A model generated the notes under the pieces. The model did not search any database, was not told where the DNA came from, and was given only the letters and a program-made list of their open reading frames with translations. Positions 11,093 through 57,805 of a stretch of 64,000 nt of DNA are shown here, piece by piece. Origin of the DNA: Cyanophora paradoxa CCMP329. Lineage: Eukaryota; Plantae; Glaucophyta. The stretch covers positions 496,001 through 560,000 of the forward strand of contig QPMI01000005.1 in NCBI GenBank assembly GCA_004431415.1, given 5' to 3'. The translations under genes were made by a program, and so were the position numbers. Each line of letters starts with the position of its first letter. The stretch's first letter is position 1.

Positions 11093-11650
11093 TGTGAGCA
11101 GAAGACAAGCGCGGCTGCAGCCCTGTCCAGCGGGGGGAGTACGCTTGCCGAGTCCGTTGCAACTAGCCCACAATTTGATCGCGCGCGCGCGTGCGCACAG
11201 CTGCAGGCCCGGGCGCCCTGGCCCGGCCCGGAGATCTAGATCTACATCTAGAGCTAGGAGCCTATAGCTAGGCGCGGCCCCTCTATAGCTATAGCTAGCT
11301 ATCATAGTACGTATAGATCTTTTCAAATGCGCAGCCTGACAGGCAGCGCTAGCCGCTGAGCTGCAGCTGCATGCATATGCGCATGCCGCAGTGCGCGCTC
11401 AGGATCGCACCTGTGCATGCGCGCGGGCGGCCTCTCGAGCTCAGAGTCTCATTCGCACTGCGGCATCATTTCAAGTTTGAATATAAGACATGTACAGGAC
11501 AGTTGCAACAATAAAATCGAAAATCGTAACGACAGTGAGATTTAGATGGATATATATCTATAGCTCGACGGACGCCTTAGAACATTGCAGTGCCACGCAA
11601 CACACTATAACCAGGTTAAAAAGCTGACTCTGTAAACGGGACAGACGTCG

Positions 11651-14600: not shown

Positions 14601-16070
14601 CAGCGGCCAGGCGACTCTATATTCGGCCGACCGGCCGCCCCGGGGGCGCACGTTCACTATGCCGTTCTCGTTGGAGCAGCTGGCGGCGCCCATGAGGCAG
14701 CCGCCGCGGTGGAGCTCGAGGAGGCGGGGCCACGTCAGGTCCGCCTCCAGGTCCCTCTGCCCCGCTGGCGTCCGGAAATTCCTGCGCGAGAATCGATGTC
14801 ACCACAGACGAAGGGGGTACGGTGCATGGGGCGCGCACACGACCTCGGGGACGCCTCCGGTGAGGTCCTTCAGGCCGTAGTCGACGAAGCCCGACACGAG
14901 CACCTCGTACCCCCCGTGCACCTTCGCGTACGCCTTCTCCAGCAGCGACACCCACAGCTCGTTCGCTGCGAGAGGGTACGGGTGAGGGGCCGGGGCGGGG
15001 GAGCAGGCCAGAGGGGTGGAGGGGGGGGCGGGGGGCGGGGGGCGGGGGGCGGGGCGGACGGTCGTGGCAGCGGGCGTAGACGGGCTTCGTGTTGTACCGG
15101 TAGCAGAGTACGCGGTCATCGATGACGACCCGGTGCCAGTACTCGTCCTGGAGACGCGTCAGCGCGAGGCCTTGCCCGGCCTAGTAGCTGCCCGGCGAGG
15201 GCGAGGGCGCGCCTTGTAGATGGCCACCGCGTACAGGCCGCGCAGCGCGAACTCGACCTCCTTGCGCCCCGGCAGCACGAAGAGGCGCTTCAGGTACTCC
15301 TTCCGGGTCGCGAGCACGGCCATCGAGCTGATGAACCAGCAGTTGCCGAGCTGCGCGCGCGCGCAGTGCAGGGCTCAGCTGCAGTTCGGTGGCCGCGGGC
15401 ACCGCGAGGGCGAGCCCGGGCGGCGCGGCCGCGCACCTCGCCCTGAATGACGTCCGAAGGCTCCGCGCCGCGGACGAAGAGCATCGGGGTCCCGGGGCAG
15501 AACCTGCCGCCCGGCCCGCCCGCGCGGCGCGCGCCCGCAATCAGATTCGAACGCGAGCCGATTCACGGGTCGAAAGAGGGCGCGCGGGCTGCCGCGGGCG
15601 GGCGCACTCGGCGGGTCGCAGCCAGGACGTGAAGTCCGCCTCGCTCGGCAGCCGCGGGCCCGGGAACTCGCGGTCCTCGAACAGCTGCCGGCGTGTGAGC
15701 GCGCCCGGATTTGGTCCGCGCCGAAGCTAATGATCAACAGCCCGTGGCCGCGGCAGCGCATATGCAAATGCATGCGGAAATACGTATACATTAACATGTG
15801 GTCGCACCTCTCCCGGACCGAGCTGCTTGATCAGAGAGGCCGGCTGCCGATTCGAATCGTGGTTCACGCATGCCTATGCGAAACCGTAAGTCCGCTGGAG
15901 CTGTCGGCGGCGCGGGCGCCCGGCTGCGCATGCACGACCTTCACACGGCAAGTCTCGGTCGTGCACAGAGGCCGGGGCGTCGGCAATGGCTTCTTCACCT
16001 TTTTAGCTGCTCCGTGCGTGCTGGGCGCTGGCACCAGCAACGGCGCTGGCGCCTGGCGAGAGATCGGCAT
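11651..16070 (-). CDS. Calpain-family cysteine protease (CysPc plus calpain domain III, low-complexity/coiled-coil tail)
   Basis: [23 protein letters not shown] (catalytic Cys), [26 protein letters not shown] (His), LRNP (Asn), [16 protein letters not shown]; domain [22 protein letters not shown]. Start inferred; one phase inconsistency near 13955. Confidence 0.9.
13990..14486. repeat. ~500-bp purine (G/A)-rich low-complexity tract inside a calpain intron
   Basis: Almost only G and A on the + strand, with many G runs; lies between the LRNP and EWEG exons. Confidence 0.85.
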
Positions 16071-16237: not shown

Positions 16238-17045
16238 GCTTCACCTTCACCTTCCACCGCTTCCGGGCTTCCCGCTCCGTGTACCCCCGGCCCCCTCCGG
16301 TCTTGCCACCTGTACCCCGTGCGCAGGGGCCCTACAGGAGACGTTTATGCCGAGAGGCGTGCAGCGAAGAGCCCATCCCGCTGATCTGCAGCTGCGCGGC
16401 TGCCAACATGCAGGCGCGGCCCCCCTAGGCCTCCAGAGCGCGCCCTGCCCTTCCCTTGCGCCCGTACCCCCCACGACGCGTCGACGTCCGACCGACCCGG
16501 ACGCCGGTGCAGAGCCCGTCAAAGACCCGCAGGAGCAATTCGAGCATAGCCACATGCCCCGCGGCCTTGCCGCCTTCGAATTCGTTCCCTCTGCTAGCGC
16601 TTCACCTTCACCATCCACCCCTTCCGGGCTTCCCGCTCCGTGTACCCCCCTCCGGTCTTGCCATGGCCACCTGTACCCCGTGCGCAGGGGCCCTACAGGA
16701 GACGTTTATGCCGAGAGGCGTGCAGCGAAGAGCCCATCCCGCTGATCTGCGCGGCTGCCAACATGCAGGCGCGGCCCCCCTAGGCCTCCAGAGCGCGCCC
16801 TGCCCTTCCCTTACGCTGGTACCCCCCACGACGCGTCGACGTCCGACCGACCCGGACGCCGGTGCAGAGCCCGTCAAAGACCCGCAGGAGCAATTCGAGC
16901 ATAGCCGCATGCCCCGCGGCCTTGCCGCCTTCGTTCCCTCTGCAGCTGCTAGCGCACGTGAGCGCTTCACCTTCACCATCCACCGCTTCCAGCTGCAGGT
17001 CCCGCTCCGTGAATCCGGATCCCCCCCTCCGGTCTTGCCACCTGC
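16238..17045. repeat. Tandem repeat, ~365-bp unit, ~2.2 copies
   Basis: CTTCACCTTCACC..CCACC recurs at ~16240, ~16600 and ~16965, with collinear downstream sequence (GGGGCCCTACAGGAGACGTTTATGCCGAGAGG). Confidence 0.9.
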
Positions 17046-18705
17046 TGAGATGGCGTCCTCCCTGCACCCCTGACCTCGTAGTGGGCTCCTCGGCGGGGCC
17101 CTTGCGCCCGATTTCATGAAGCCGCCGCGTCCCGGGGGGTACACGGCGTTCAAACGGCAAGGAGCGGCGGCCGCCGGGCAGCAAGGGGGAATGAGGGGGA
17201 AGAGGAGGGCGTTGGAGGGCGTTTTAGGGTGCGCTGGGACTCGCATCGCCCTGCGCATGCGCCTCACGCAAGATCTAGAGGTCAGAGGACGCTCCCGCAC
17301 CGGTCGGACGGGTCGTCCGGGGTACAGGCGCGAGGGGAGGATGGGGCGCGTTTGGCTGCAGGCCTGCACTTCGGCAGCCCCGTGAAGTGCTGGGATGGCG
17401 TCCTCCCTGCACCCCTGACCTCGGAATCGGCTCCTCGGGGGGCCCTGCGCCCGATTTCATGAAGCCGCCGCGTCCCGGGGGGTACACGGCGTTCAAACGG
17501 CAAGGAGCGGCGGCCGCCGGGCAGCAAGGGGGAATGAGGGGGAAGAGGAGGGCGTTGGAGGGCGTTTTAGGGTGCGCTGGGACTCGCATCGCCCTGCGCC
17601 TCACGCAAGATCTAGAGGTCAGAGGACGCTCCCGCACCGGTCGGACGGGTCGTCCGGGGTACAGGCGCGAGGGGAGGATGGGGCGCGTTTGGCTGCAGGC
17701 CTGCACTTCGGCAGCCCCGTGAAGTGCTGGGATGGCGTCCTCCCTGCACCCCTGACCTCGGAATCGGCTCCTCGGGGGGCCCTGCGCCCGATTTCATGAA
17801 GCCGCCGCGTCCCGGGGGGTACACGGCGTTCAAACGGCAAGGAGCGGCGGCAGCAAGGGGGAATGAGGGGGAAGAGGAGGGCGTTGGAGGGTGTTTTAAT
17901 AATTTAGGGTGCGCTGGGACTCGCATCGCCCTGCGCATGCGCCTCACGCAAGATCTAGAGGTCAGAGGACGCTCCCGCACCGGTCGGACGGGTCGTCCGG
18001 GGTACAGGCGCGAGGGGAGGATGGGGCGCGTTTGGCTGCAGGCCTGCACTTCGGCAGCCCCGTGAAGTGCTGGGATGGCGTCCTCCCTGCACCCCTGACC
18101 TCGGAATCGGCTCCTCGGGGGGCCCTGCGCCCGATTTCATGAAGCCGCCGCGTCCCGGGGGGGTACACGGCGTTCAAACGGCAAGGAGCGGCGGCCGCCG
18201 GGCAGCAAGGGGGAATGAGGGGGAAGAGGAGGGCGTTGGAGGGCGTTTTAGGGTGCGCTGGGACTCGCATCGCCCTGCGCCTCACGCAAGAGGTCAGAGG
18301 ACGCTCCCGCACCGGTCGGACGGGTCGTCCGGGGTACAGGCGCGAGGGGAGGATGGGGCGCGTTTGGCTGCAGGCCTGCACTTCGGCAGCCCCGTGAAGT
18401 GCTGGGATGGCGTCCTCCCTGCACCCCTGACCTCGGAATCGGCTCCTCGGGGGGCCCTGCGCCCGATTTCATGAAGCCGCCGCGTCCCGGGGGGTACACG
18501 GCGTTCAAACGGCAAGGAGCGGCGGCAGCAAGGGGGAATGAGGGGGAAGAGGAGGGCGTTGGAGGGTGTTTTAATAATTTAGGGTGCGCTGGGACTCGCA
18601 TCGCCCTGCGCATGCGCCTCACGCAAGATCTAGAGGTCAGAGGACGCTCCCGCACCGGTCGGACGCGTACGGGTCGTCCGGGGTACAGGCGCGACGGGAG
18701 GATGA
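17046..18705. repeat. Tandem repeat, 332-345-bp unit, ~5 copies
   Basis: GATGGCGTCCTCCCTGCACCCCTGACCTCG at 17049, 17394, 17731, 18074 and 18406. Copies are near-identical apart from small indels. Confidence 0.95.
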
Positions 18706-18731
18706 GGCTCGTCACGGCGTTCGGCGGCAGG

Positions 18732-19260
18732 TAGGGTTGCCGTTTAAGCTTAAGTTTAAGCCTCCCCCACTTAAACTAAAAGTGCGCTAAACTTAAGCGT
18801 TTAAGCGCTTAAACTTAAGTGCGTACAAGAGCACCCAGTATGATGAGGAAACAGACACCGATTCAATCTCAAACGCGCCACAGACATGCTAGAATGCCTT
18901 CCTGACGGATTTTAATCACTAAACACACGATTTCCCAGAAGTTTCAGTCAGTGAAGCTTCTGAAGGGGGGTACACGTAATCCTTTCTGAGGGAGACCCAG
19001 CCTCGAAACTGGCACTGCGCAGTGTTGCGACCTTTATGAATGCAGAGAAGTTTTTATAGCCGATGGCGATGACATACAGCATGTTTTCTGCACATCTGAC
19101 ATCGTTTTGAGGGGGTTTCCGGGGGTTCTGCCCCCGGGATTCGAACCGGGGGTGTCCCCGTTTAAGCTTAAGTTTAAGCAGGCCGCTTTAACTAAAACTT
19201 AAACTTAACTTAAACGCTTAACTAGTTCAAGTGCACTTGAACTTAAGCGCGGCAACCCTA
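18732..19260. mobile_element. Non-autonomous hAT-superfamily DNA transposon (MITE), 529 bp
   Basis: TIRs TAGGGTTGCCG / CGGCAACCCTA. Perfect 8-bp TSD GCGGCAGG at 18724-18731 and 19261-19268. Subterminal TTAAG/TTAAAC motif clusters, AT-rich, no transposase ORF. Confidence 0.93.
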
Positions 19261-19768
19261 GCGGCAGGCCGGCGCCGGCCCCGGCGGCCCGGCGGCGCCG
19301 GCGCCGGGCCGGGCGCTGCCGGCCAGTGCCGGCCCACTGCCGGGGCGCATGATCCGCCGCGCATGCGCAACTTCATGATCACAAGATTCACAATTGCAAC
19401 TTGAACCGTCAAACGTTCAACGGTTGAACTTGCCACCGATCGCGATCAGTAGCACCGACTGGCAGTGTGGCTGCACTGTGGCACCGAGTTGCCCGCGGGC
19501 CGGCGGCGGCGCGCGCGCGGCCGCGGCGGCCCCGCCGGCCGGCGAGTCGGCGACTCGGCGGCGTCGGCGCCTTGCGGGCCGAAGTTGCGGCCACCGAGGC
19601 CCACCGTGGCACTTGCCGCAAGTTGCCGGCGCAAGTTGCCGCCCAACTTAACGTTGCGGCCCAACTTGCCGGCCTTACCGAAGTTCCGAATGAAGCCTTT
19701 TTTAAACCAAGTTCCCTATTAACCGCTAAAAATTCTGAACACTGCAGAGATTCATCAGAACAGTGGGA

Positions 19769-19816
19769 TCAGGCGAAGCCTCTTTCAGGCGAAGCCTCTT
19801 TCAGGCGAAGCCTCTT
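19769..19816 (+). repeat. 3 x 16-bp TCAGGCGAAGCCTCTT at the left end of the array
   Basis: Exact tandem copies, each containing the mini-hairpin AGGC-GAA-GCCT. Confidence 0.95.
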
Positions 19817-22800
19817 TCTCAAACCCAAAAACCGACGATCTAAATTCCTTTTTTAACCTTTTTTTCCACTCGAGATCCCCCCTGCTAAATAATTTCCGTG
19901 TCGCACTCCCTCGAGGCAGAATTATTAATTTTGCCTCGACACAGACGCGATTGCTGCTAGTCACACAGCCACCCGAACCCCCACAGACCTCTCTAGAGCC
20001 AATTTTAGCGTCCTGGCTCCCCTAAGACGACCGCTCTCCCGTGGGCGTCGCGCGAATATCGAATATTCCTCTGGATCAATTCCGGTTCTTAACCTCCGAC
20101 AAATCCAGTCCGAGTCAGAAGGTGGGACCCGGTCCCGCCCGGTCCCGCGACAAAATCGCGCCAGGAACGCCCCAGAACGATACAGAATGACGCGCGAGGG
20201 CGAGCGCATCGCCGCAAACCCGATTTCGCGCGCCGTCGACGCTCCAGTGCGAAGAGTCGGCCGAAAATTTGATCCGGCCGGTTCCGGCCGGTCCCGCGAC
20301 GCGCGCAATCGATGCGTACGGGCGCGCATAGACATAGCAGCGCCTGCGCACCCCGAAATCCGCTTTTCGGAGCCGGAAGAGCGCAGGAAGGTACCCGACG
20401 GCAAAAATTCGATCCTAGACAGGCCCGGAGATCTTTCCGCGCGCCCGCGCCGCGGCGCATGCGCGGAACGATAGCATAAGCATTTGAGATGTAGAAGAAG
20501 CCTTCCGCACGGTCTCTAAATGCGCCGGGCCGCGAGGACCCAGCCGACCCCGGAAATTCGATCCTGGACGGACCTGCACAACTTTCCGCGCGCCCTCGCA
20601 TCCTCACGCGAGCGCATCGCTACAATTTTCAGTTGACTCCTTTTTAAAGCTTTTCGCAAGCTCTGCAGGCGCGACAGGGCACGAGAACCCAGCCGACGCA
20701 AAAATTCGATCCTGGACATACCCGACGGCAAGAATTCGATCCTAGACAGGCCCGGAGATCTTTCCGCGCGCCCACGCCGCGGCGCATGCGCGGAACGATA
20801 GCATATGCATTTTAGATGTAGAAGAAGACTTCCGCACGGTCTCTAAATGCACCAGGCCGCGAGGACCCAGCCGACCCCGAAAATTCGATCCTGTACGGAC
20901 CTGAACATCTTTCCGCACGCCCTCGCATTCTCGCGCATGCGCATCGCTACAATATTCATTTGAGATTTTATCAAAGCCTTCCACAAGCTTCGAAGACGCG
21001 AAAGAGCACGAGAACCCAGCCGACGGCAAAAATTCGATCCTGCACGGACCCGGACATCTTTCCGCGCGCCCACGCCGCGGCGCATGCGCGGAACAATAGC
21101 ATAAGCATTTGAGATGTAGGCAAAGACTTCCGCACGCTTTGCGTATGCGCCGAGCCGCGAGGACCCAGCCGACCCGAAAATTCGATCCTGTACGTATACG
21201 GACCTGCACAGCTTTCCGCGCGCCTCGCATCCTCGCGCGTGCGCATCGCTACAATAGTAATTTGAGATCTTTGTTAAGCTTTTCGCGAGCTCCGAGGACG
21301 CGACAGGGCGCGAGAATCCAGCCGACCCCGAAAATTCGATCCTGCATGGACCTGCACGTCTTTCCGCGCGCCCTCGCCTCCGCAGCCCCGCACATCGATG
21401 CTATATACATTCGATCGCGAGATTCTGTTTAAGCGATTCGCAAGCTCTGTGCATGCGCCTGGCCGCGAGAACCTCGCCCCTCCCGGGCCTCCTTCCCAAC
21501 AATATTATAATTAATCTCTTCTCAATCTGCTCCACCCTTTAGTTCCTCAGTAAATTAATATTCCTCTAGCCGGCCAGCGCTAGCTGGACTGGCCGTCAGC
21601 CAGCCAGCTTCCAGCCAGCTGCAGAAAGCTGTTCGCGATCGGCCAGGCCGCTGGCCAGTCGCTGAGTGCCCTATATATATAGGCCTACTGTAACAGCGGC
21701 GAGGGCGTCCGCGAGGCTTCGCCGTACTTAGTGCTCCGCAGGAGCACGGATCTTGTCTCAAACCCAAAAACCGCCGATATAAATTCCTTTTTTAACCTTT
21801 TTTTCCACTCAAGATCCCCCCTGCTAAATAATTTCCGCGTCGCACTCCCTCGAGGACGAATTATTAATTCTGCCTCGACACGGACGCGATTGCCGCTAAT
21901 GACTCAGCTACCCTAACCCCCACAGACCTCTCTAGATCCATTTTTAGCGTCGTGGCTCCCCTAAGACGACCGCTCGCCCGTGGGCGTCGCGCGAAAATCG
22001 AATTTCCCTCTGGATCAATTCCGGTACTTAACCTCCGACAAATGCAGTCCGAGTCAGAAGGTGGGACCCGGTCCCGCCCGGTCCCGCGACGAAATCGCGC
22101 CAGGGACGCCCCAGAACGATACAGAATGCCGCGCGAGGGCGAGCGCATCGCCGCAAGCTCGATTTCAAGCGCCGTCGACGCTCCAGTGCGAAGAGTCGGC
22201 CGAAAATTTGATCCAGCGCTAGCCGGTCCCGCCCGGTCCGCGACGCGCGCAATCGATGCGTACTGGCGCGCATGGACATAGCAGGGCCTGCGCACCCCCG
22301 AAATCCGCTTTTCGGAGCCGGAACAGCGCAGGAAGGTACCCGACGGCCAAAATTCGATCCTGCACGCGCCCTGACATCTTTCCGCGCGCCCACGCCGCGG
22401 CGCATGCGCGGAACGATAGCATAAGCATTTAAGATGTAGGCAAAGTCTTCCGCACGCTTTGCGTATGCGACGGGCCGCGAGGACCCAGCCGACCCCGAAA
22501 ATTCGATCCTGCATGGACCTGCACATCTTTCCGCGCGCCCTCGCCTCGAGCTCCGCAGCCCCGCACATCGATGCTATAGCTATATGCATTCAAGATTCTG
22601 TTTAAGCGATTCGCAAGCTCTGTGCATGCGCCTGGCCGCGAGAACCTTGCCCCTCCCGGGCCTCCCTCTCAACAATATTATATATAATTCATCTCCTCTA
22701 ATCTCAACCTGCTCCGGCCTCCCTTTATTTCCTCAGTACATTAATATTCCTCTAGTTATATTCCTCTAGCCGGCCAGCGGTAGCTGGACTGGCCGTCAGC

Positions 22801-23380
22801 CGGCCAGCTTCCAACCAGAAAGCTGTTCGCGATCGGCCAGGCCGCTGGCCAGTGCCCTATAGGCCTACTGTGACAGCCGCGAGGGCGTCCGCGAGGCTTC
22901 GCCGTACTTAGTGCTCCGCAGGAGCACGGATCTTGTCTCAAACCCAAAAACCGACGATCTAAATTCCTTTTTTAACCTTTTTTTCCACTCGAGATCCCCC
23001 CTGCTAAATAATTTCCGTGTCGCACTCCCTCGAGGCAGAATTATTAATTTTGCCTCGACACAGACGCGATTGCTGCTAGTCACACAGCCACCCGAACCCC
23101 CACAGACCTCTCTAGAGCCAATTTTAGCGTCCTGGCTCCCCTAAGACGACCGCTCTCCCGTGGGCGTCGCGCGAATATCGAATATTCCTCTGGATCAATT
23201 CCGGTTCTTAACCTCCGACAAATCCAGTCCGAGTCAGAAGGTGGGACCCGGTCCCGCCCGGTCCCGCGACAAAATCGCGCCAGGAACGCCCCAGAACGAT
23301 ACAGAATGACGCGCGAGGGCGAGCGCATCGCCGCAAACCCGATTTCGCGCGCCGTCGACGCTCCAGTGCGAAGAGTCGGC

Positions 23381-23455
23381 CGAAGCCTCTTTCAGGCGAA
23401 GCCTCTTTCAGGCGAAGCCTCTTTCAGGCGAAGCCTCTTTCAGGCGAAGCCTCTT
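23381..23455 (+). repeat. 4+ x 16-bp TCAGGCGAAGCCTCTT (internal restart of the element 5' end)
   Basis: A truncated unit switches at CGAA into the 16-mer array, then continues with TCTCAAACCC at 23456. Confidence 0.95.
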
Positions 23456-26400
23456 TCTCAAACCCAAAAACCGCCGAGCGAAATTCCTTTTTTAACCTTT
23501 TTTTCCACTCGAGATCTCCCCTGCCAGATAATTTCCGTGTCGCAGCTCCTCGACACAGAATTATTAATTCTGCCTCGACACGGACGCGATTGATGGACAT
23601 TACACAGCTGCCCGAACCCCCACAGACCTCTCTAGATCCATTTTTAGCGTCCTGGCTCCCCTAAGACGACCGCTCCCCCGTGGGCGTCGCGCGGAATCGA
23701 ATTTCCCTCTGGATCAATTCCGGTACTTGAGATCCGACAACTGCAGTCCGAGTCAGAAGGTGGGACCCGGTCCGCCCGGTCCCGCGACGAAATCGCGCCA
23801 GGGACGCCCCAGAACGCTAAAGAGTGACGCGCGAGGGCGAGCACATCGCCGCAAGCTCGATTTCGAGCGCCCTCGACGCTGCAGTGCCAAGAGTCGGCCG
23901 AAAATTTGATCCGGCCGGTCCCGCCCGGTCCCGCGACGCGCGCAATCGATGCGTACTGGCGCGCATAGACATAGCACGACCTGCGCACTCCAGATATCCG
24001 CTTTCCGGAGCCGGAACAGCGCAAGAAGGTGCCCGATAGCGAAAATTCGATCCTGGACAGCCCGGACATCTTTCCGCGCGCCCAGGCCGCGGCGCATGCG
24101 CGGAACAATAGCATATGCATTTCAGATGTAGAAGAAGCCTTCCACACGGTTTGCACATGCGCCCGGCCGCGAGGACCCAGCCGACCCCGAAAATTCGATC
24201 CTCTTCAGACCTGAACAACTTTCCGCGCGCCCTCGCGTCCTCACGCAGGCCGCATCGCTGGTATATTCATTTGAGATTTTATCAAAGCCTTCCACAAACT
24301 TCGAAGACGCGAAAGACCACGAGAACCCAACCGACGGCAAAAATTCGATCCTGCACGGACCCGGAGATCTTTCCGCGCGCCCACGCTGCGGCGCATGCGC
24401 GGAACAATAGCATAAGCATCTGAGATGTAGATGAAGCGTTCCGCACGCTTTACAGATGTGCCAGGCCGCGAGGACCCAGCCGACCCCGAACATTCGATCC
24501 TCGCTACTATATTCATTTGGGATTTTATCTAAGCCTTCCACAAGCTTCGAAGACGCGAAAGAACACGAGAACCGTGAACCCAGCCGGCGGCAAAAATTCG
24601 ATCCTGCGCGGCCCCATCCCTACAATAGTAATTTGAAATCTTCGTTAAGCTTTTCGAGACCTCCGACGACGCGACAGGGCGCGACAATCCAGCTGGCCCC
24701 GAAAATTCGATCCTTCACGGACACGCACGTCTTTCCGCGCGCCCTCGAGATCTGCACTGCCAGATAATTATTAATTAGATCTGCCCCAGATCGATCTTCG
24801 AGTATATAATTATAGTTATATCCCGTCTCAGCAGCCCGGCGCCCTTCCTCAGATTTGCCAAGATCCTGAATACAAAAAGATTTCGCGAACACATTGGCAA
24901 GATCTGTCAAGATCTTGAATTAAAAAAAGATCTCACCGATCTCGCGCCATTGACGATTCGATGACGGATTTAGTTGTGACTGACGAACTTCTGAGTCCAA
25001 CTTATGACAGTCTTCACGGCTAGCAGCAGCCCGGCGCCCTTCCTCAGATCTCGATCGAGACCTCCGAGGACGCGACAGGGCGCAAGAATCCAGGTGACCC
25101 GAAAATTCGATCCTTCACGGACCTGCACATCTTTCCGCGCGCCCTCGCATCCTCGCGCATGCGCATCGCTACAATATTCAGTTGAGATCTTTTTAAAGCT
25201 TTTCGCAAGCTTTGAAGACATGAAAGAGCACGAGAACCCAGCCGACGGCAAAAATTCGATCCTGCACAGGCCCGGACATCTTTCCGCGCGCCCACGCCGG
25301 GGCGCATGCGCGGAACAATAGCATAAGCATTTGAGATGTAGGTAAAGTCTTCCGCACGCTTTGCGTATGCGCCGGGCCGCGAGGACCCAGCCGACGCAAA
25401 AATTCGATCCTGAACGGGCCTGCACAGCTTTCCGCGCGCCCTCGCCTCCGGATCCGCAGCCCTGCACATTGATACTATATGCATTCGAGATTCTGTTTAA
25501 GTGATGCGCAAGCTCTGTGCATGCGCCTGGCCGCGAGAACCTCGCCCCTCCGGCCGCGGGCCTCCTTCCCAACAATATTATATAATTAATCTCCTCTCAA
25601 TCTGCTCCACCCTTTATTTCCTCAGCACATTAATATTCCTCTAGCCGGCCAGGGCTAGCTGGACTGGCCGTCAGCTAGCCAGCTTCCAGCCAGAAAGCTG
25701 TTCGCTGGCCAGTCGATGAGTGCCCTATAGGCCTACTGTGACAGCCGCGAGGGCGTCCGCGAGGCTTCGCCGTACTTAGTGCTCCGCAGGAGCACGGATC
25801 TTGTCTCAAACCCAAAAACCGCCGACCGAAATTCCTTTTTTAACCTTTTTTTCCACTCAAGATCCCCGTGCCAAATAATTTCCGTGTCACATTCCCTCGA
25901 GACAGAATTATTAATTCTGCCTCGACACAGACGCGATTGATGGACATTACACAGCTGCCCGAACCCCCACAGACCCCTCTAGATCCATTTTTAGCGTCCT
26001 GGCTCCCTAAGACGACCGCTCTCCGTGCACGTCGCGCGAATTTCGAATTTCCCTCTGGATCAATTCCGTTACTTAACCTCCGACAAATGCAGTCCGAGCC
26101 AGAAGGTGGGACCCGGTCCCGCCCGGTCCCGCGACGAAATCGCGCCAGGGACGCCCCAGAACGATACAGAATAACGCGCGAGGGCGAGCGCATCGCCGCA
26201 AGCTCGATTTCGGGCGCCCTCGACGCTGCAGTCCGAACAGTACGCCGAAATTTGATCCTCCCGGTTCCGGCCGGTCCCGCGACGCGCGCAATCGATGCGT
26301 ACTGGCGCGTATAGACATAGCACGGCCTGCGCACCCCGAAATCCGCTTTTCGGAGCCGGAACAGCGCAGGAAGGTACCGACGGCAAAAATTCGATCCACA

Positions 26401-29400
26401 CGGCCCCGGACATCTTTCCGCGCGCCCACGCCGCGGCGCACGCGCGGAACGATAGCATAAGCATTTAAGATGTAGAAGAAGACTTCCGCACAGTTTACGG
26501 ATGTGCCGGGCCGCGAGGACCCAGCCGACCCCGAAAATTCGATCCTGGACGGACCTGCACGTCTTTCCGCGCGCCCTCGCAGAAGCGCGGCCCCGCAGGC
26601 ATGTACCAGCACTTGAGAATCTCCGGCACGTCTTGACCGCCCTCCGCATCGCGCCTGTATCGCATAGCTCTTGGTCGCACTCCCTCGAGCCAGAATTATT
26701 AATTCTGCCTCGACACGGACGCGATTGCTGCTGGTAACACACCCACCCGAACCCCCACAAACCTCTCTACATCCATTTTTAGCGTCGTGGCACCCTAAGA
26801 CGACCGCTCTCCCGTAGGCGTCCCGCGAAAATCGAATTTCCCTCTGAATCAATTCCGGTACTTAACCTCCGACAAATGCAGTCCAAGTCAGAACGTGGAA
26901 CCCGGTCCCGCCCGGTCCCGCGACGAAATCGCGCCAGGGACGCCCCAGAACGATACAGAATGCCGCGCGAGGGCGAGCGCATCGCCGCAAGCTCGATTTC
27001 GGGCGCCCTCGACACTCCAGTGCGAAGACTCCGCCGAAATTTTGATCCAGCCGGTCCGGCCCGGTCCGCGACGCGCGCAATCGATGCGCACTGGCGCGCA
27101 TAGACATAGCAGGGCCTGCGCACCCCGAAATCCGCTTTTCGGATGCCGAACAGCGCAGGAAGGTACCGACGGCAAAAATTCGATCCTGCACAGCCCCGGA
27201 CATCTTTCCGCGCGCCCACGCGCGGCGCATGCGCGGAACAATAGCATACGCATTTGAGATGTAGACAAAGCATTCCGCACGCTTTGCCGATGCGCCGGGC
27301 CGCGGGGACCCAGCCGACCCCGAAAATTCGATCCTTCACGGACCTGCACAGCTTTCCGCGCGCCCTCGCATCCTCATGCATGGGCATCGCTACAATATTC
27401 ATTTGAGAGCTTTTCAAAGCGTAGCGCAAGCTCCAAGGGCGCGACAGGGCGCGAGAACCCAGCCGACCCCGAAAATTCGATCCTGCATGGACCTGCAGGT
27501 TTTTCCTCGCGCCCTCGCCTCCGCAACCCTGCACATTGATACTATATGCATTCGAGTTTCTTTTTAAGCGATTCGCAAGCTCTGTGCATGCGCCTGGCTG
27601 CGATCGCGAGAACCTCGCCCCTCCCGGGCCTCACTAAATTCCTTTTTTAACCTTTTTTTCCACTCGAGATCCCCCCCGCTAAATAATTTCCGCGTCGCAC
27701 TCCCTCGAGGACGAATTATTAATTCTGCCTCGACACGGACGCGATTGCCGCTAATGACTCAGCTACCCTAACCCCCACAGACCTCTCTAGATCCATTTTT
27801 AGCGTCGTGGCTCCCCTAAGACGACCGCTCGCCCGTGGGCGTCGCGCGAAAATCGAATTTCCCTCTGGATCAATTCCGGTACTTAACCTCCGACAAATGC
27901 AGTCCGAGTCAGAAGGTGGGACCCGGTCCCGCCCGGTCCCGCGACGAAATCGCGCCAGGGACGCCCCAGAACGATACAGAATGCCGCGCGAGGGCGAGCG
28001 CATCGCCGCAAGCTCGATTTCAAGCGCCGTCGACGCTCCAGTGCGAAGAGTCGGCCGAAAATTTGATCCAGCGCTAGCCGGTCCCGCCCGGTCCCGCGAC
28101 GCGCGCAATCGATGCGTACTGGCGCGCATGGACATAGCAGGGCCTGCGCACCCCCGAAATCCGCTTTTCGGAGCCGGAACAGCGCAGGAAGGTACCCGAC
28201 GGCCAAAATTCGATCCTGCACGCGCCCTGACATCTTTCCGCGCGCCCACGCCGCGGCGCATGCGCGGAACGATAGCATAAGCATTTAAGATGTAGGCAAA
28301 GTCTTCCGCACGCTTTGCGTATGCGACGGGCCGCGAGGACCCAGCCGACCCCGAAAATTCGATCCTGCATGGACCTGCACATCTTTCCGCGCGCCCTCGC
28401 CTCGAGCTCCGCAGCCCGCACATCGATGCTATAGCTATATGCATTCAAGATTCTGTTTAAGCGATTCGCAAGCTCTGTGCATGCGCCTGGCCGCGAGAAC
28501 CTTGCCCCTCCCGGCCTCCCTCTCAACAATATTATATATAATTCATCTCCTCTAATCTCAACCTGCTCCGGCCTCCCTTTATTTCCTCAGTACATTAATA
28601 TTCCTCTAGTTATATTCCTCTAGCCGGCCAGCGGTAGCTGGACTGGCCGTCAGCCGGCCAGCTTCCAACCAGAAAGCTGTTCGCGATCGGCCAGGCCGCT
28701 GGCCAGTGCCCTATAGGCCTACTGTGACAGCCGCGAGGGCGTCCGCGAGGCTTCGCCGTACTTAGTGCTCCGCAGGAGCACGGATCTTGTCTCAAACCCA
28801 AAAACCGCCGACCGAAATTCCTTTTTTAACCTTTTTTCCACTCGAGATCCCCCCTGCTAAATAATTTCCGTGTCACACTCCCTCGAAGCAGAATTATTAA
28901 TTCTGCCTCGACACGGACGCGATTGATGGACATTACACAGCTGCCCGAACCCCCACAGACCCCTCTAGATCCATTTTTAGCGTCCTAGCTCCCCTAAGAC
29001 GACCGCTCGCCCGTGGGCATCGCACGACATCGAATTTCCCTCTGGATCAATTCCGGTACTTAACCGCCGACAAATGCAGTCCGAGTCAGAAGGTGGGACC
29101 CGGTCCCGCCCGGTCCCGCGACGAAATCGCGCCAGGGACGCCCCAGAACGATACAGAATGACGCGCGAGGGCGAGCGCATCGCCGCAAACTCGGTTTCGG
29201 GCGCCCTCGACGCTCCAGTGCAAACAGTCGGCCGAAATTTTGATCCGGCCGGTTCCGTCCGGTCCCGCGACGCGCGCAATCGATGCGTACTGGCGCGCAT
29301 AGACATAGCAGGGCCTGCGCACGCCCGAAATCCGCTTTTCGGAGCCGGAACAGCGCAGGAAGGTACCCGACGGCAAAAATTCGATCCTGCACAGACCCGG

Positions 29401-32400
29401 GCAACTTTCCGCGCGCCCGCTCCGCGGCGCATGCGCGGAACAATAGCATAAGCATCTGAGATGTAGACAAAGCGTTCCCCACGCTTTGCAGATGCGCCGG
29501 GCCGCGAGGACCCAGCCGACCCCGAAAATTCGATCCTTCACGGACCTGCACGTCTTTCCGCGCGCCCTCGCATCCTCACGCGAGCCCATCGCTACTATAT
29601 TCATTTGGGATTTTATCTAAGCCTTCCACAAGCTTCGAAGACGCGAAAGAGCACGAGAACCCAGCCGGCGGCAAAAATTCGATCCTGCACGGGCCCGGAC
29701 ATCTTTCCGCGCGCCCACGCCGCGGTGCATGCGCGGAACAATAGCATAAGCATTTGAGATGTAGAAGAAGCTTTCCAAGCCGGGCCACCTGGGCGGGGCT
29801 GGAGCTGGCCGCCTACTCTCCGGGCGCTCAACAGTGCCGGCCCCTCTGCTGTGACAGACGTGAGGGCGTCCGCGAGGCTTCGCCGTACTTAGTGCTCCGC
29901 AGGAGCACGGATCTTGTCTCAAACCCAAAAACCGACGATCTAAATTCCTTTTTTAACCTTTTTTTCCACTCGAGATCCCCCCTGCTAAATAATTTCCGTG
30001 TCGCACTCCCTCGAGGCAGAATTATTAATTTTGCCTCGACACAGACGCGATTGCTGCTAGTCACACAGCCACCCGAACCCCCACAGACCTCTCTAGAGCC
30101 AATTTTAGCGTCCTGGCTCCCTAAGACGACCGCTCTCCCGTGGGCGTCGCGCGAATATCGAATATTCCTCTGGATCAATTCCGGTTCTTAACCTCCGACA
30201 AATCCAGTCCGAGTCAGAAGGTGGGACCCGGTCCCGCCCGGTCCCGCGACAAAATCGCGCCAGGAACGCCCCAGAACGATACAGAATGACGCGCGAGGGC
30301 GAGCGCATCGCCGCAAACCCGATTTCGCGCGCCGTCGACGCTCCAGTGCGAAGAGTCGGCCGAAAATTTGATCCGGCCGGTTCCGGCCGGTCCCGCGACG
30401 CGCGCAATCGATGCGTACGGGCGCGCATAGACATAGCAGCGCCTGCGCACCCCGAAATCCGCTTTTCGGAGCCGGAAGAGCGCAGGAAGGTACCCGACGG
30501 CAAAAATTCGATCCTAGACAGGCCCGGAGATCTTTCCGCGCGCCCGCGCCGCGGCGCATGCGCGGAACGATAGCATAAGCATTTGAGATGTAGAAGAAGC
30601 CTTCCGCACGGTCTCTAAATGCGCCGGGCCGCGAGGACCCAGCCGACCCCGGAAATTCGATCCTGGACGGACCTGCACAACTTTCCGCGCGCCCTCGCAT
30701 CCTCACGCGAGCGCATCGCTACAATTTTCAGTTGACTCCTTTTTAAAGCTTTTCGCAAGCTCTGCAGGCGCGACAGGGCACGAGAACCCAGCCGACGCAA
30801 AAATTCGATCCTGGACATACCCGACGGCAAGAATTCGATCCTAGACAGGCCCGGAGATCTTTCCGCGCGCCCACGCCGCGGCGCATGCGCGGAACGATAG
30901 CATATGCATTTTAGATGTAGAAGAAGACTTCCGCACGGTCTCTAAATGCACCAGGCCGCGAGGACCCAGCCGACCCCGAAAATTCGATCCTGTACGGACC
31001 TGAACATCTTTCCGCACGCCCTCGCATTCTCGCGCATGCGCATCGCTACAATATTCATTTGAGATTTTATCAAAGCCTTCCACAAGCTTCGAAGACGCGA
31101 AAGAGCACGAGAACCAGCCGACGGCAAAAATTCGATCCTGCACGGACCCGGACATCTTTCCGCGCGCCCACGCCGCGGCGCATGCGCGGAACAATAGCAT
31201 AAGCATTTGAGATGTAGGCAAAGACTTCCGCACGCTTTGCGTATGCGCCGAGCCGCGAGGACCCAGCCGACCCCGAAAATTCGATCCTGTACGTATACGG
31301 ACCTGCACAGCTTTCCGCGCGCCCTCGCATCCTCGCGCGTGCGCATCGCTACAATAGTAATTTGAGATCTTTGTTAAGCTTTTCGCGAGCTCCGAGGACG
31401 CGACAGGGCGCGAGAATCCAGCCGACCCCGAAAATTCGATCCTGCATGGACCTGCACGTCTTTCCGCGCGCCCTCGCCTCCGCAGCCCCGCACATCGATG
31501 CTATATACATTCGATCGCGAGATTCTGTTTAAGCGATTCGCAAGCTCTGTGCATGCGCCTGGCCGCGAGAACCTCGCCCTCCCGGGCCTCCTTCCCAACA
31601 ATATTATAATTAATCTCTTCTCAATCTGCTCCACCCTTTAGTTCCTCAGTAAATTAATATTCCTCTAGCCGGCCAGCGCTAGCTGGACTGGCCGTCAGCC
31701 AGCCAGCTTCCAGCCAGCTGCAGAAAGCTGTTCGCGATCGGCCAGGCCGCTGGCCAGTCGCTGAGTGCCCTATATATATAGGCCTACTGTAACAGCGGCG
31801 AGGGCGTCCGCGAGGCTTCGCCGTACTTAGTGCTCCGCAGGAGCACGGATCTTGTCTCAAACCCAAAAACCGACGATCTAAATTCCTTTTTTAACCTTTT
31901 TTTCCACTCGAGATCCCCCCTGCTAAATAATTTCCGTGTCGCACTCCCTCGAGGCAGAATTATTAATTTTGCCTCGACACAGACGCGATTGCTGCTAGTC
32001 ACACAGCCACCCGAACCCCCACAGACCTCTCTAGAGCCAATTTTAGCGTCCTGGCTCCCCTAAGACGACCGCTCTCCCGTGGGCGTCGCGCGAATATCGA
32101 ATATTCCTCTGGATCAATTCCGGTTCTTAACCTCCGACAAATCCAGTCCGAGTCAGAAGGTGGGACCCGGTCCCGCCCGGTCCCGCGACAAAATCGCGCC
32201 AGGAACGCCCCAGAACGATACAGAATGACGCGCGAGGGCGAGCGCATCGCCGCAAACCCGATTTCGCGCGCCGTCGACGCTCCAGTGCGAAGAGTCGGCC
32301 GAAAATTTGATCCGGCCGGTTCCGGCCGGTCCCGCGACGCGCGCAATCGATGCGTACGGGCGCGCATAGACATAGCAGCGCCTGCGCACCCCCGAAATCC

Positions 32401-34827
32401 GCTTTTCGGAGCCGGAAGAGCGCAGGAAGGTACCCGACGGCAAAAATTCGATCCTAGACAGGCCCGGAGATCTTTCCGCGCGCCCGCGCCGCGGCGCATG
32501 CGCGGAACGATAGCATAAGCATTTGAGATGTAGAAGAAGCCTTCCGCACGGTCTCTAAATGCGCCGGGCCGCGAGGACCCAGCCGACCCCGGAAATTCGA
32601 TCCTGGACGGACCTGCACAACTTTCCGCGCGCCCTCGCATCCTCACGCGAGCGCATCGCTACAATTTTCAGTTGACTCCTTTTTAAAGCTTTTCGCAAGC
32701 TCTGCAGGCGCGACAGGGCACGAGAACCCAGCCGACGCAAAAATTCGATCCTGGACATACCCGACGGCAAGAATTCGATCCTAGACAGGCCCGGAGATCT
32801 TTCCGCGCGCCCACGCCGCGGCGCATGCGCGGAACGATAGCATATGCATTTTAGATGTAGAAGAAGACTTCCGCACGGTCTCTAAATGCACCAGGCCGCG
32901 AGGACCCAGCCGACCCCGAAAATTCGATCCTGTACGGACCTGAACATCTTTCCGCACGCCCTCGCATTCTCGCGCATGCGCATCGCTACAATATTCATTT
33001 GAGATTTTATCAAAGCCTTCCACAAGCTTCGAAGACGCGAAAGAGCACGAGAACCCAGCCGACGGCAAAAATTCGATCCTGCACGGACCCGGACATCTTT
33101 CCGCGCGCCCACGCCGCGGCGCATGCGCGGAACAATAGCATAAGCATTTGAGATGTAGGCAAAGACTTCCGCACGCTTTGCGTATGCGCCGAGCCGCGAG
33201 GACCCAGCCGACCCCGAAAATTCGATCCTGTACGTATACGGACCTGCACAGCTTTCCGCGCGCCCTCGCATCCTCGCGCGTGCGCATCGCTACAATAGTA
33301 ATTTGAGATCTTTGTTAAGCTTTTCGCGAGCTCCGAGGACGCGACAGGGCGCGAGAATCCAGCCGACCCCGAAAATTCGATCCTGCATGGACCTGCACGT
33401 CTTTCCGCGCGCCCTCGCCTCCGCAGCCCCGCACATCGATGCTATATACATTCGATCGCGAGATTCTGTTTAAGCGATTCGCAAGCTCTGTGCATGCGCC
33501 TGGCCGCGAGAACCTCGCCCCTCCCGGGCCTCCTTCCCAACAATATTATAATTAATCTCTTCTCAATCTGCTCCACCCTTTAGTTCCTCAGTAAATTAAT
33601 ATTCCTCTAGCCGGCCAGCGCTAGCTGGACTGGCCGTCAGCCAGCCAGCTTCCAGCCAGCTGCAGAAAGCTGTTCGCGATCGGCCAGGCCGCTGGCCAGT
33701 CGCTGAGTGCCCTATATATATAGGCCTACTGTAACAGCGGCGAGGGCGTCCGCGAGGCTTCGCCGTACTTAGTGCTCCGCAGGAGCACGGATCTTGTAAA
33801 AGTTCTCAATTAAACACTGGGATTAATGGAAAACCGCGACTGTTCGTTCGAACTCCGCATCGTAAGCGTGTCTTTTTGTGACTCTGTTCTAGCTAGCGCA
33901 CCTGTACCCGAACTGAGTTATTCATTATCGATTTTAGCAAAGACAAGTTTTGAAAAAAAGTAAAATTGTTCGCTGATCTGCTCGAAATATATATGAAAAT
34001 TCGTTGGCAGTTATTGAAATGTTAATAGCGGTTATTCTCGCTTTAAATCGCAGTTAAAGTATGTTAAAATGTACTGCCCCTGTACCCGCACGCAGTGCTG
34101 GGATCCGCGGCCGGAGGCCCGGAGCCGGCGGAGCAGCGGAGCTCTCATGACTCATGAGTCATGAGTCATGATCACTGAGTCAGCGTGGCGCGCGCAACCC
34201 GGGTACCGTAGTACGGTAGCGCTCACCGCCGCGCGTTCAGCCTGGCAGCGGCTACCAGCCTGGGCCAGCCGCCTGCCGCAGGCCCGCAGTCACAGACTCA
34301 CGGCGCAGCGCAGGCCCGGCCGCGCCCTGGGCCCTGGCCCCTGAGGCTAGTACGACTCTGTGCGAGTACGCATACGTACGGACGAGGCCGCTGGCCGGAT
34401 ATCGATCGATCGGATTCTGAACCCGCCGGGCCGGGATCTCGGAGGGCTGGAGGCCGGAGGCTCTGGACCCCGGGAGCAGCAGCTGTACATGTTATCCGGA
34501 TTCCCGCCGCAGCCGCGGATTCCGGGAAGTACTCTCTGATCGCCGAGTCGCTTGCAATTGCGTCCAACGGCTGCCACAGCCTACGCCCACGGTGCGCGAC
34601 GGCTAGCGCGACGGAAGTTTTCCGAGTCAACTTACGTATTCGTATATATGTAGGCACGCACGTACACGAGCGTCGCCTCACAGGGGACGCGAGCGCGAGT
34701 CTCGGAGGTGCGCTTTTCCCGCGCGTTCCTTCTCTCTTCAAGGCTTCCCTGGCCCGGACTATAGCTAGCCGCCGCCTCCGGGCCGCCTCATATGCATGCT
34801 CGCAGGCCTAGGCGACAGGTACAGCAC

Positions 34828-37800
34828 ATGGCTCGAACTTGCGGTACGAATTCGACGTCGACGGCGGGGTCCTTCTCGCGATTATGGCCATCATCCGCCC
34901 CCACGGTTAGGCCGCAGCTGCAGCCGCGCTCAATCTTAAGCTTGCCGTCATCGGTCTCCGTGATCGCTCGCGGTCGCGGTCGGGGGCGCCGTGCGCGGAT
35001 CGGCGAAGCCGGCGCCGCCCCGGCCGCCTTAGGCCTGCTGCTGGCCGCCGTGGCCATCCTCTCCATACTCTTCGCTGCGACATGTACAGCCGCCCCCAGT
35101 GCGTGCCCGCGCCCGCCCTAGCTGATCTAGGCCTCCTGACTTAAACCAAATCCCCCGACTCGGCGAGCCCGGCCCGAGTTTGCCGTCGGCCAGCTGCGGA
35201 CGCCCCAGCATATATGCATGCATTCGCGTCTAGATTTGGCGCCGGACCGCGCTGCGACCGCCCAGCCTTAGGGCCTGGTGTGCCGCGCGCCCTTCTAGAT
35301 CTAGCCCCGACGACCGTACCGCGCTCACGGAGCGCGCGCGCCCTGTTGTTATGTTAGACGGAATGTTAACGGACGCGCGCGCAGCCTTCACGAGCAGCGA
35401 GACGGCCGCCGGCTTCTTCGGGGCGACCTCCGCCTTCGACGTGCAGCAGACGGGGAGCGCTAGCCCCCTGGACCTGCAGCTCCTGGCGCTCAGCAACGAC
35501 GGGCAGCAGCCGGCGTTCGCGTACGTGGCAAGCATGCAGGCGGGGCCGGCCACGGGCGACGCCGTCGGCAACAAGCTGCGCGTGTACCAGCTCAACGTCT
35601 CGACGGGGGCGGCCACGGGCCAGACGGGGCGCTCTTCGGACATCCCCAGCATGGTCGTCACGCGCATGTGCGTCGTCTCTCACTCGGCGGCGCCCGCGTC
35701 GGACCTCGTGTTCCTCTTCGGCCGGACGGTCTCGACCCCGGCCTACACGGCCTCGGTCGAGCGGTTCAAGCGGGACGGCACGGGCCGCGACACGAGCTTC
35801 GCCATGAGCGCGCTGCCCAACAGCGGCGGGCCCGGGGCCGACGAGGTGCCCATGCTTGACGCGTCTCTACGTTTCATCTTCAGCTGATTCCATCGGGCCC
35901 GGCCGCCGGGCCCGCGCAGTACGTGACGGACTGCGCTGTGGTGGGCCAGCTCGGCAGCGGGACCGCCTTCGCCGTCTTCATCACGACCATGCGGCTCGTG
36001 ACGGGGGCCGACCCCTACGGCGGCGGTCTCTACCGCCTCGCGGTGCGCTCTAACCTCAAGTATATATTTTTTAAAAACAGGATTCGAGCCTTGTCGCCTT
36101 AGCTAGCTAAAGGCTACTCTAATCTGACGTCGACGCGCCTGCAGTTCTTCGACGTCGCCCAGCCCACCTCCGTCTCGATCACCAAGGTTTTCGACGCGGC
36201 CACCATCCTGCCACAGGGCGGGAAGCCCCTGCTCCAGGCCCGCCCGCCCTCCTCTCCCTTTGCTCCTTATATACTTTTCTTCTAAGAAAACTTTACGCCC
36301 GCGTAGGTGTCCCGGTTCCCGAACGCTGCGGGCACCGCGAACAGCCTCTTCATCCTGCAGGGCCGCTTCACCCGGCAGGGCTCCCAGGGCGGCGAGAACC
36401 AGTGAGCCGTGCCCTCGCGCGCCTTCGCGACAAAGTCCGACAGGGCCGACAGGGCCGACAACACGATCATCCGCTGCACGGGCGCGCAGGGCGTCCCCTC
36501 CTGCAGCGCCTACCGGGGGTCCGACCCTGCCCCGCCCCTATCTTGAATTGGTTTAAAACAGCTGAGGCTCACGCGTGCCCCGGGCCGGGGATCCGCAGCT
36601 GGACGGTTCCGGGCACGGGCGGCTTGAGCTCCGGCTCCGTCGGCCGTTTCGCCCTAACTCCGGACCGAGACGGCTCCACTCCGGTCCGCCCCGCAGCTTC
36701 CCGTTCCGATCCCGAGTCCCTCGCCTGACGTCGACGGGCCGCCCTTGAATCGAACCCAGACCATGTATCTGGGCATCCAAGGCTTGGCCCCGTACGTGCC
36801 GGCCGCGGCGCGCAGCCTCCGCTACATCCAGACGAGCGGCATCTTCGGCGGGACCGTTTCTCTCACGCCCGCGCCCGCCTCCGGCGGGACCCTCGCCGAC
36901 GGCGAGTGGATCCCCTTCGTCGAGTTCACGAGGTGCCCTCTCCAGTTATCCGCGATCGTATTTCTTCTTGTTCGGCGCTGACGGCCTTGGTCCGCATGCG
37001 CAGCAACCCGTCGTTCGCCGTGACTGTCGTGTCGAAGACGGTCGCGTGCACCTACGCGGACGCGATGTGCAGCCCGGGCTGCACGGGCTCCTGCGCCCAG
37101 AAATGGTACCGCGCCCTCTCAGAGAATGAAAGCCCCAGATTTCCGCGAAATTGACGCGAGCGCGCACCTGCAGGCAGGGCGGCCAGTCCCGCGTCGAGAT
37201 CTACGATCTGGGCAACAAGCAGCGGGTCGCGGACCTACAGATCACCGACCTGGCCGGGCACGGCCCCACCGACCCCAGCAACACCGTCCAGGCCACCGCG
37301 TCCGCGAGCCGCTCGGCCTCGGGGTACAGCCACGTCGTCTATCTCCTGTACCCCGGCAAGCTCGTCTCGGTTACCATCCTGCCGCGTCCGCCCCCTTCCG
37401 CCCTTGTCTGATTCGCGATCGCGGCTGCCCGCACTCACCGTCATGATCATCCGATTCGCAGCGACGGCCGCTGTTACCGCCCCCGCCGTACAGAGTCGCA
37501 GCGCTCTGACTCCCGGATCCAAGTGCGCGTCTTGCTGGACTATCGATTCCGCACTGCGGCAGCAAATCTGAAATTTAAACCTACCCGCAGGTACACCTTT
37601 TCCTGGACCTTTACAGGCTTCGCCTCGAGCTACAAGGTCGCGATCAAGTCCCTGGCCTACTCCGTGTGGGGCAACCAGGAGAGCACCAGCACCGTGGGCT
37701 CCGGAGTCGCCTAGTGCGCCCCGCCCCGCCCCGCCCGGCTGCGCCCTAGACCTAGATCTCCGGCTCCGCGCGCCCCGGGCCCTGCTCTCGTTTCCTGGGC

Positions 37801-54796: not shown

Positions 54797-55667
54797 TCAT
54801 GATCATGAGTTAAAAGACTGTGAACGGACACGAGACAATAAATAAAACCGAGCTCCCGCTTTTCCGCCAGGCTACAGCTTGTGCATTTGTAGGCTTTTCG
54901 CTTTCAGTTTTCGCGAAGATATAGAGCAGGCAGCCATTATGCATGTGCCGCGGTGCCGCATCTGATCTAAAATTCGCGCGCTCTCTGGCCTCGCTTTCAA
55001 TCTCTATTGCTTCGCGCTTTTGTATGTAACTCATATATATAAGCCACTTCCTCATTCAAAGCGAAGATGTAGAAACGATTGACGTTGTCGCGTTTTTCGC
55101 TTTAGTTAGATAGCAAATCCGATGATCCGCGGTTCCCGGCGTTCTGTAAAGTTCGCCGAAGCTCCAGAGCAGAGTTATTGCAGCCCAGACCCAGAATATG
55201 TCCGACGGTCGAAGTCCCCACTGGGCCACTAGTTCGCCGGGCAGTCGTAGACTCGTAGTCAGCTGCAGCGGCTTCAACGCCGGACATACATATACATCGC
55301 CAATTGTGCGATCTTCAGTGCACTGCACTCTCTTCGCATCAGTTTTATTCAACTCACTGCCCTCTCTTCGCAGAGTTTTATTCACAACGTACCGCGCACT
55401 CTTATTTTCGCACTTATTTTCTGATATTGTGCCTGTAGGGCTTAAATCTATGCCGCAGTGCGCAGCGAGCGTGCTAGCGCTGAGCTGAGTTGTGCACTGC
55501 GGAAACACCCTAGTCGTGCTTTCGAAAGAATTCGAATTCGAGTCGAATAAAGTCGCCCCCGGAGGCGTACGGGGCCCCGGGGGTGGAAAGGGGGAGGGGG
55601 GTGGGGCCGCCGGGCACTCGCGGGGACACCAACATCCGCAGGCCGTCCGCCTCTGCTGCGTGCTTCT

Positions 55668-57668: not shown

Positions 57669-57805
57669 GTCCTCGACGCCGCTCTGCCTCGATTTTGGCG
57701 CTGCGCTGCCGCGGCGGCGAGCTCGACGCAAACTTTGTTCAAGTTCGCTGACCTAGACGGGTACCGTGCTTTTGAAGCTTCCCGCCTGGCGCACGAAGAA
57801 GCGCA

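Follow-up and report, generated by a model that had tools for sequence, protein, structure and literature searches.

Why do copies of unrelated repeats in one stretch of the Cyanophora paradoxa CCMP329 genome differ again and again by exactly six bases? The stretch (64,000 nucleotides, contig QPMI01000005.1, positions 496,001 to 560,000; hereafter "the window") holds three such repeat families, and an earlier note on this DNA had claimed that the multi-base insertions or deletions (indels) between their copies follow one rule: a triplet XYZ in one copy becomes XYZ-rc-XYZ in another, where rc is the reverse complement of XYZ. These indels are probably footprints, left when one or more cut-and-paste transposons excised; the elements would have C...G ends and make a 3-bp target-site duplication (TSD), and are most likely of the CACTA/EnSpm type. 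The families and the 6-bp footprints in them are as follows.

16238 to 16963, unstranded: 355-bp tandem repeat, two copies plus a partial third up to 17042, with four strict 6-bp footprints (16386, 16575, 16661 and 16940) against seven substitutions.
17043 to 18712, unstranded: 343-bp tandem repeat, five copies, with 6-bp footprints on TGC (17252), AGA (17271) and ACG (18663).
19813 to 33797, + strand: 14-kb array in which copies of a non-coding, high-copy Helitron-like element (5' TC; 3' hairpin, then CTTGT) follow one another head to tail.
21191, 21412, 21616, 21672, 22215, 22545, 22574, 25447, 25551 and 27601: footprints that distinguish copies within the Helitron-like array.

All 17 of the long alleles originally claimed are present as 9-mers at exactly the positions given for them, with the short triplet at the partner sites. 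Some carry caveats: CGG at 25551 is +5 or +6, varying with the C-run of the copy compared, CGA at 27601 adjoins a C>T change, CTA at 22574 could alternatively be a 6-bp tandem duplication, and TAT at 21672 is embedded in a TA run. When clean indels were tabulated without bias across all repeat copies, 6 bp was the top multi-base length, with 17 distinct events versus 1-4 for each other length from 2 to 8 bp. Fourteen of the 17 strictly follow the rule; two of the remainder are misaligned views of rule events, and the third (16285) is a near-fit.

The earlier note placed this feature at 16238 to 33796; it is present there but not limited to it, since rule-fitting 9-mers occur window-wide (274 versus 49 expected). 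The excess over a chance null is clear in the 50 kb of non-redundant DNA, which holds 223 6-bp motifs versus 42+/-10 (Markov-2) or 52+/-8 (Markov-4). Analogues built on k bases instead of three behave differently: k=4 is not enriched (7 versus 4-5), k=5 is at background (1 versus 0.6-0.8) and k=2 is weakly enriched under Markov-4 (619 versus 570). The motif is therefore specific to 3 bp. Its target triplets are arbitrary, with 53 of 64 represented and little flank preference. Decay is also observed: one-mismatch 6-bp motifs are in excess (277 versus 100-131 expected), which marks them as aged scars and the process as old as well as recent.

A second class, which the earlier note did not mention, has the form XYZ-C-rc-G-XYZ and adds 8 bp. 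It occurs 49 times in non-redundant DNA (3.6-4.8 expected), and among the 16 possible spacer pairs the enrichment of C/G far exceeds that of every other. Both strands show one and the same pattern. The flanking bases do not determine the C and G, and are themselves not fixed as C/G (enrichment only 1.3). One-mismatch versions number 37, with about 10 expected. Examples in the repeats are:

17169, 17512 and 18193: 8-bp C/G footprint GGC-C-GCC-G-GGC in the 343-bp repeat.
21657: decayed 8-bp footprint in the Helitron-like array.

The simplest origin for the fixed C and G is the two terminal bases of an element whose ends are 5'-C...G-3'; the class requires an element that starts with C and ends with G. 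The earlier note had offered as an alternative a 3-nt staggered cut repaired by fold-back synthesis, with no element, and this leaves the fixed, non-templated C and G unexplained. A rival explanation is replication template switching or polymerase-theta-like fold-back, in which three bases would be copied in reverse and re-primed to give a micro inverted triplication. XYZ-rc-XYZ does have this form, and short template switches are known, appearing as mutation clusters that contain short inverted copies (PMC9435742), but such mutations have neither a fixed 3-bp length nor non-templated fixed bases. Template switching gives no 3-bp ruler (k=4 is not enriched), arbitrary triplets provide no self-priming, and the process cannot supply the C and G. 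It should produce variable lengths and fully templated sequence; the length here is fixed and the C/G non-templated. We consider it very improbable.

One 8-bp event of the same form with A/T spacers, TTA-A-TAA-T-TTA, occurs in the 343-bp repeat at 17895 and 18570 (intervals 17893-17908 and 18568-18583). The A/T-spacer class is not enriched, with one case in non-coding DNA.

Are the long alleles insertions, and are they truly in the genome? In the Helitron-like family, long alleles are derived insertions. The TAC site is long in three near-identical copies among 25 homologous positions, and its triplet elsewhere varies (GAC, CAC, TAC or CAT), so the insertion copied a locally mutated triplet. 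Likewise, the long allele at the AGC site carries AGC although most copies have GGC, and a single short allele corresponds to one long allele at 22545 (CTC) and, in another copy, to a different one at 25447 (TCC). In this array the long alleles copy derived triplets, which makes them insertions and not the starting points of slippage deletion from palindromes. Such deletion was one of the three results that the earlier note had named as refuting its claim, and not one of the three was obtained. It had also called for confirmation in raw reads. In 33380-39380, where the motif lies within 17% of 31-mers, 97-98% of sampled words are present in 14 short-read runs from 2012 to 2024. Thirteen of these carry a DNA label and are marked as possible sources of the window's DNA; the remaining run, dated 2012, is of unknown kind. 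Contigs from each of the four runs examined contain the AGC>AGCGCTAGC allele, at a summed depth far above single copy.

These data bear on a further rival, namely that the ancestral state is the long, palindromic allele, from which the short one arose by slippage deletion, or that the differences are assembly or polishing artefacts. Long alleles are indeed in the majority at two sites of the 343-bp array. However, deletion would deplete the motif, yet it is enriched 4-20-fold, and slippage does not account for derived triplets being copied. As for artefact, motif-bearing DNA is present in short-read contigs of independent runs from 2012, 2019 and 2024, and the motifs follow exon-intron structure. 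This rival is essentially refuted, and we give it almost no weight.

The relationship to gene structure can be seen in one long gene and in four hotspots:

35351 to 54796, + strand: control gene, approximate 94-exon model, with footprints enriched in introns and mostly absent from exons.
860 to 1290, unstranded: intergenic hotspot, four 6-bp and seven 8-bp motifs.
11160 to 11470, unstranded: hotspot with nested footprints, upstream of the ADA2 gene, 16 6-bp and three 8-bp motifs.
34130 to 34560, unstranded: intergenic hotspot, four 6-bp and five 8-bp motifs.
55100 to 55620, unstranded: intergenic hotspot, four 6-bp and six 8-bp motifs.

The observed density of 6-bp motifs is 11.4/kb in intergenic DNA (80 versus 4.1 expected), 4.3/kb in introns (31 versus 3.9) and 2.0/kb in coding sequence (24 versus 12, many within Gly/Ala-rich runs); for 8-bp motifs the values are 4.0/kb (28 versus 0.4), 1.5/kb (11 versus 0.1) and 0.2/kb (3 versus 0.9), all from an approximate exon model and intergenic intervals picked by eye in one window. 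Collapsing perfect motifs iteratively shortens intergenic DNA by 8.6% and intron DNA by 3.2%, versus about 0.3-0.4% in simulations, and takes 11160-11420 from 261 to 185 bp. The process is long-running and makes a measurable part of the non-coding DNA. Relative to substitutions, the 355-bp pair has four strict events per seven, and the Helitron-like unit has 5-6 events per 17-20 in its 3' part and one per 35 in its 5' part, so that footprints in some repeats accrue at 0.25-0.6 per substitution. Within this unit they are concentrated in the 3' 420 bp and rare in the 5' 550 bp.

The ADA2 gene (about 8.5-11 kb) matches the eukprot protein tig00000042_g15509.t1, whose identifier has the format used in the C. 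paradoxa genome paper (PMC6704402), and allows a comparison with other genomes. ADA2 loci of four other eukaryotes have no excess of the 8-bp class, and only the Paspalum locus has a 6-bp excess (16 versus 5.5, half of them within one 1.5-kb GC-rich stretch; one 8-bp motif versus 0.2), which is composition-driven.

How might excision leave just these scars? From the products we infer an element, hairpin intermediates and nick positions. Insertion would create XYZ[C...G]XYZ. By analogy with hAT and RAG, the transposase would then nick one strand per end, and the freed 3'-OH would attack the other strand to form flank hairpins. A nick exactly at the junction would give a blunt hairpin, and a nick 1 nt inside the terminal repeat would keep the element's C in the loop. 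Host nucleases would next open the hairpins a and b nt beyond the tip, and both ends would expose parts of the same reverse-complement triplet. Where a+b>=3, a blunt or microhomology join would yield a single product, either XYZ-rc-XYZ (+6, junction nick) or XYZ-C-rc-G-XYZ (+8, nick 1 nt inside). In our enumeration, 10 of the 16 opening combinations (0-3 nt each side) yield this one full product, which would explain the uniformity without a special repair enzyme.

Other opening combinations predict short minor products. With perfect motifs masked, an excess (z 3.4-5.2) is seen for each of +4 Z', +4 X', +5 Z'X' and +6 C-n-G; +4 Y', which the model cannot make, is not enriched (z 1.1-1.7). The P-nucleotides of hairpin-type excision are therefore found both in the full products and in shorter ones. 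The earlier note's idea of a 3-bp-TSD transposon excising through flank hairpins thus gains support most of all from the 8-bp class with its C/G spacers, and also from the 3-bp ruler, the insertion polarity, the exon depletion and the enrichment of minor products with P-nucleotides. It had also called the transposon "very active": the accumulated scars agree with this, but scars do not demonstrate present-day movement. A wider claim, which we regard as evenly balanced, is that transposon insertion and excision (or transposase action without lasting insertion) is the chief cause of multi-base indels across the Cyanophora genome and helps to build its promoters and introns, the two classes representing two CACTA-type cleavage registers, junction or 1 nt inside. 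To our knowledge, there is no biochemical description of CACTA-type nicking at either of these positions.

Several observations weigh against the transposon reading, among them the coarse compartments behind the densities above. A search of the window for a 3-bp-TSD element with terminal inverted repeats (TIRs) or of CACTA type found only chance pairs among the matches listed, no transposase (TnpD/Transposase_21) was found among the window's open reading frames (ORFs) scanned, and reads on 18400-20700 (2301 bases) gave no filled sites among the loose ends listed. Empty and footprint alleles, for their part, are numerous at homologous sites. Plain TSD footprints (XYZXYZ) are barely enriched, and in the 343-bp array, where 3-4 of the 5 copies carry long alleles, polarity is ambiguous. 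With perfect motifs masked, mixed 7-bp products show no enrichment (5 versus 2.6-3.5), although one polymorphic example exists (GCA-C-TGC-GCA at 19012). Their scarcity means that the 6- and 8-bp classes are not independent ends of one reaction, so two transposase families or coupled cutting are needed. Reported plant footprints are heterogeneous, so repair in Cyanophora must be unusually uniform. Finally, the C. paradoxa genome paper describes little repeat expansion (PMC6704402), and DNA transposons are methylated (PMC12344493).

An element-free process could produce the same scars if a transposase-derived or host nuclease (or an instantly reversed integration) made 3-nt staggered breaks in open chromatin that were then hairpin-sealed and repaired, the C coming from the bound end of an element or being added untemplated. 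It would suit the extreme uniformity and a scar density that is very high while no filled site was seen among the loose ends listed. Without prior duplication, however, there is no reason for XYZ to stand on both sides, and the fixed C/G are most simply element end bases. We therefore think such breaks unlikely, and prefer excision of a 3-bp-TSD transposon.

A single 10-bp indel of another kind, AGCG-CACGTG-AGCG at 16951-16964, has a 4-bp duplication around CAC|GTG and looks like what the ends of a CAC...GTG element that makes a 4-bp TSD might leave behind.

How does this compare with known systems? CACTA elements have a variable 3-bp TSD and CACT(A/G) ends (PMC4423477). The scars point to a 3-bp duplication on variable targets (k=3 only), and the C/G spacers imply only the first base, C, of such an end. 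Plant CACTA/EnSpm footprints (PMC3859356; Pack-CACTA, PMC6379663) share with the scars and the element proposed for Cyanophora the 3-bp TSD on variable targets, C...G ends and short inverted TSD copies. In carnation, dTac1 (TSD TGG) leaves TGCATGG and TGGCCGG (PMC3859356), which can be read as inverted copies of the TSD and may be partial products of the same kind. The plant footprints examined are heterogeneous and partial (+4), whereas in Cyanophora two complete products dominate (+6 and +8, about 15 per kb of intergenic DNA) and, unlike in plants, the 8-bp class would retain, on either side of the inverted triplet, the C and G that terminate the element.

Excision through flank hairpins is established for hAT and RAG (PMC2803484), and Ac/Ds adds P-nucleotides and microhomology joining (PMC5873905). 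The hAT elements (Ac/Ds, Hermes) thus share flank hairpins, P-nucleotides, microhomology-guided joining and biased products with the model proposed for Cyanophora, but they have an 8-bp TSD, and the centre of their palindrome is complementary to the flank base that adjoins the element. In Cyanophora the +6 palindrome is even, and the +8 one has at its centre a fixed C/G independent of the flank. The coding-end hairpins of RAG/Transib (P-nucleotides of V(D)J joining; PMC2803484) also match the model in being flank hairpins, but the TSD is 5 bp, and V(D)J joints are diversified where Cyanophora scars are stereotyped.

Specific variants of these systems can be ruled out. The 3-bp ruler and the lack of fixed C/G flanks in the 8-bp class exclude hAT-type chemistry on a 5-bp C-NNN-G duplication, and the k=5 count excludes a Transib/RAG 5-bp TSD. 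PIF/Harbinger is excluded by TAA/TTA making up only 4 of the 223 6-bp motifs, and a nick 2 nt inside the element by the absence of any CA-rc-TG case. In RAG/Transib the nick falls exactly at the junction, and a nick there would produce the +6 class.

Transposon footprints have long been proposed in the plant literature as a source of sequence diversity. Footprints are usually too varied to count, and in Cyanophora they take two exact, countable patterns, so the idea can be tested across the whole genome: a scar records where an element once inserted, its decay dates it, and scar density maps the element's destinations. A prediction of how CACTA-type transposases cut also follows from the C/G class. 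A +6 scar keeps the reading frame and so could add two residues to a protein, though the exon excess in the window is small. Hairpin excision footprints and their chemistry (hAT, RAG, plant CACTA) are already known; what appears new is the scale and uniformity, the two exact forms and the implied cleavage registers. Our literature search, with pre-2000 plant work incompletely covered, found no description of two exact footprint forms at such density, nor of this signature in Cyanophora.

One further mobile element sits between the repeat families:

18732 to 19260, unstranded: hAT-like MITE (a miniature transposable element with inverted repeats), 529 bp, TIR TAGGGTTGCCG, 8-bp TSD GCGGCAGG.

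It carries the 7-bp footprint at 19012, which is missing from a second genomic copy, and is a bystander. Its subterminal repeats are rich in TTAAG, and the second copy, present in reads, is diverged.

All three repeat families are likewise passive substrates of the footprint process. The Helitron-like family is very abundant, with a summed read depth of at least hundreds of times single copy; its element end had no match in the metagenome contigs where it was looked for. One unit contains an insert of about 305 bp (24745-25054) with 10-bp inverted ends (TCGAGATCTG...CAGATCTCGA). It has a 26-bp direct repeat in its interior but lacks a clean TSD, and the host unit is partly missing at the site. 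A 16-bp minisatellite of 3-5 copies lies immediately 5' of two unit starts (19769-19818 and 23381-23457), and short foreign fillers occupy deletion junctions of the array at 26582-26673 and 29777-29845.

The window as a whole is eukaryotic, intron-dense and 64% GC. Mean intron length is 78 bp in the 94-exon gene model, versus 86 bp for the C. paradoxa genome (PMC6704402), and GC content also agrees. The 94-exon gene encodes about 4,000 aa, Ser/Thr-rich, with hydrophobic stretches toward the C-terminus; one ORF piece has no Pfam match. Tandem paralogous genes lie at 57803-59573 and 61986-63770; their first ORFs have no Pfam match, and they look F-box/LRR-like as judged by eye only. At about 70% identity this pair was too diverged for indel scoring and was left out. 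On the - strand, 12800-15700 holds a calpain-like gene with a weak Calpain_III match and a G-rich, low-complexity intron at about 14000-14500.

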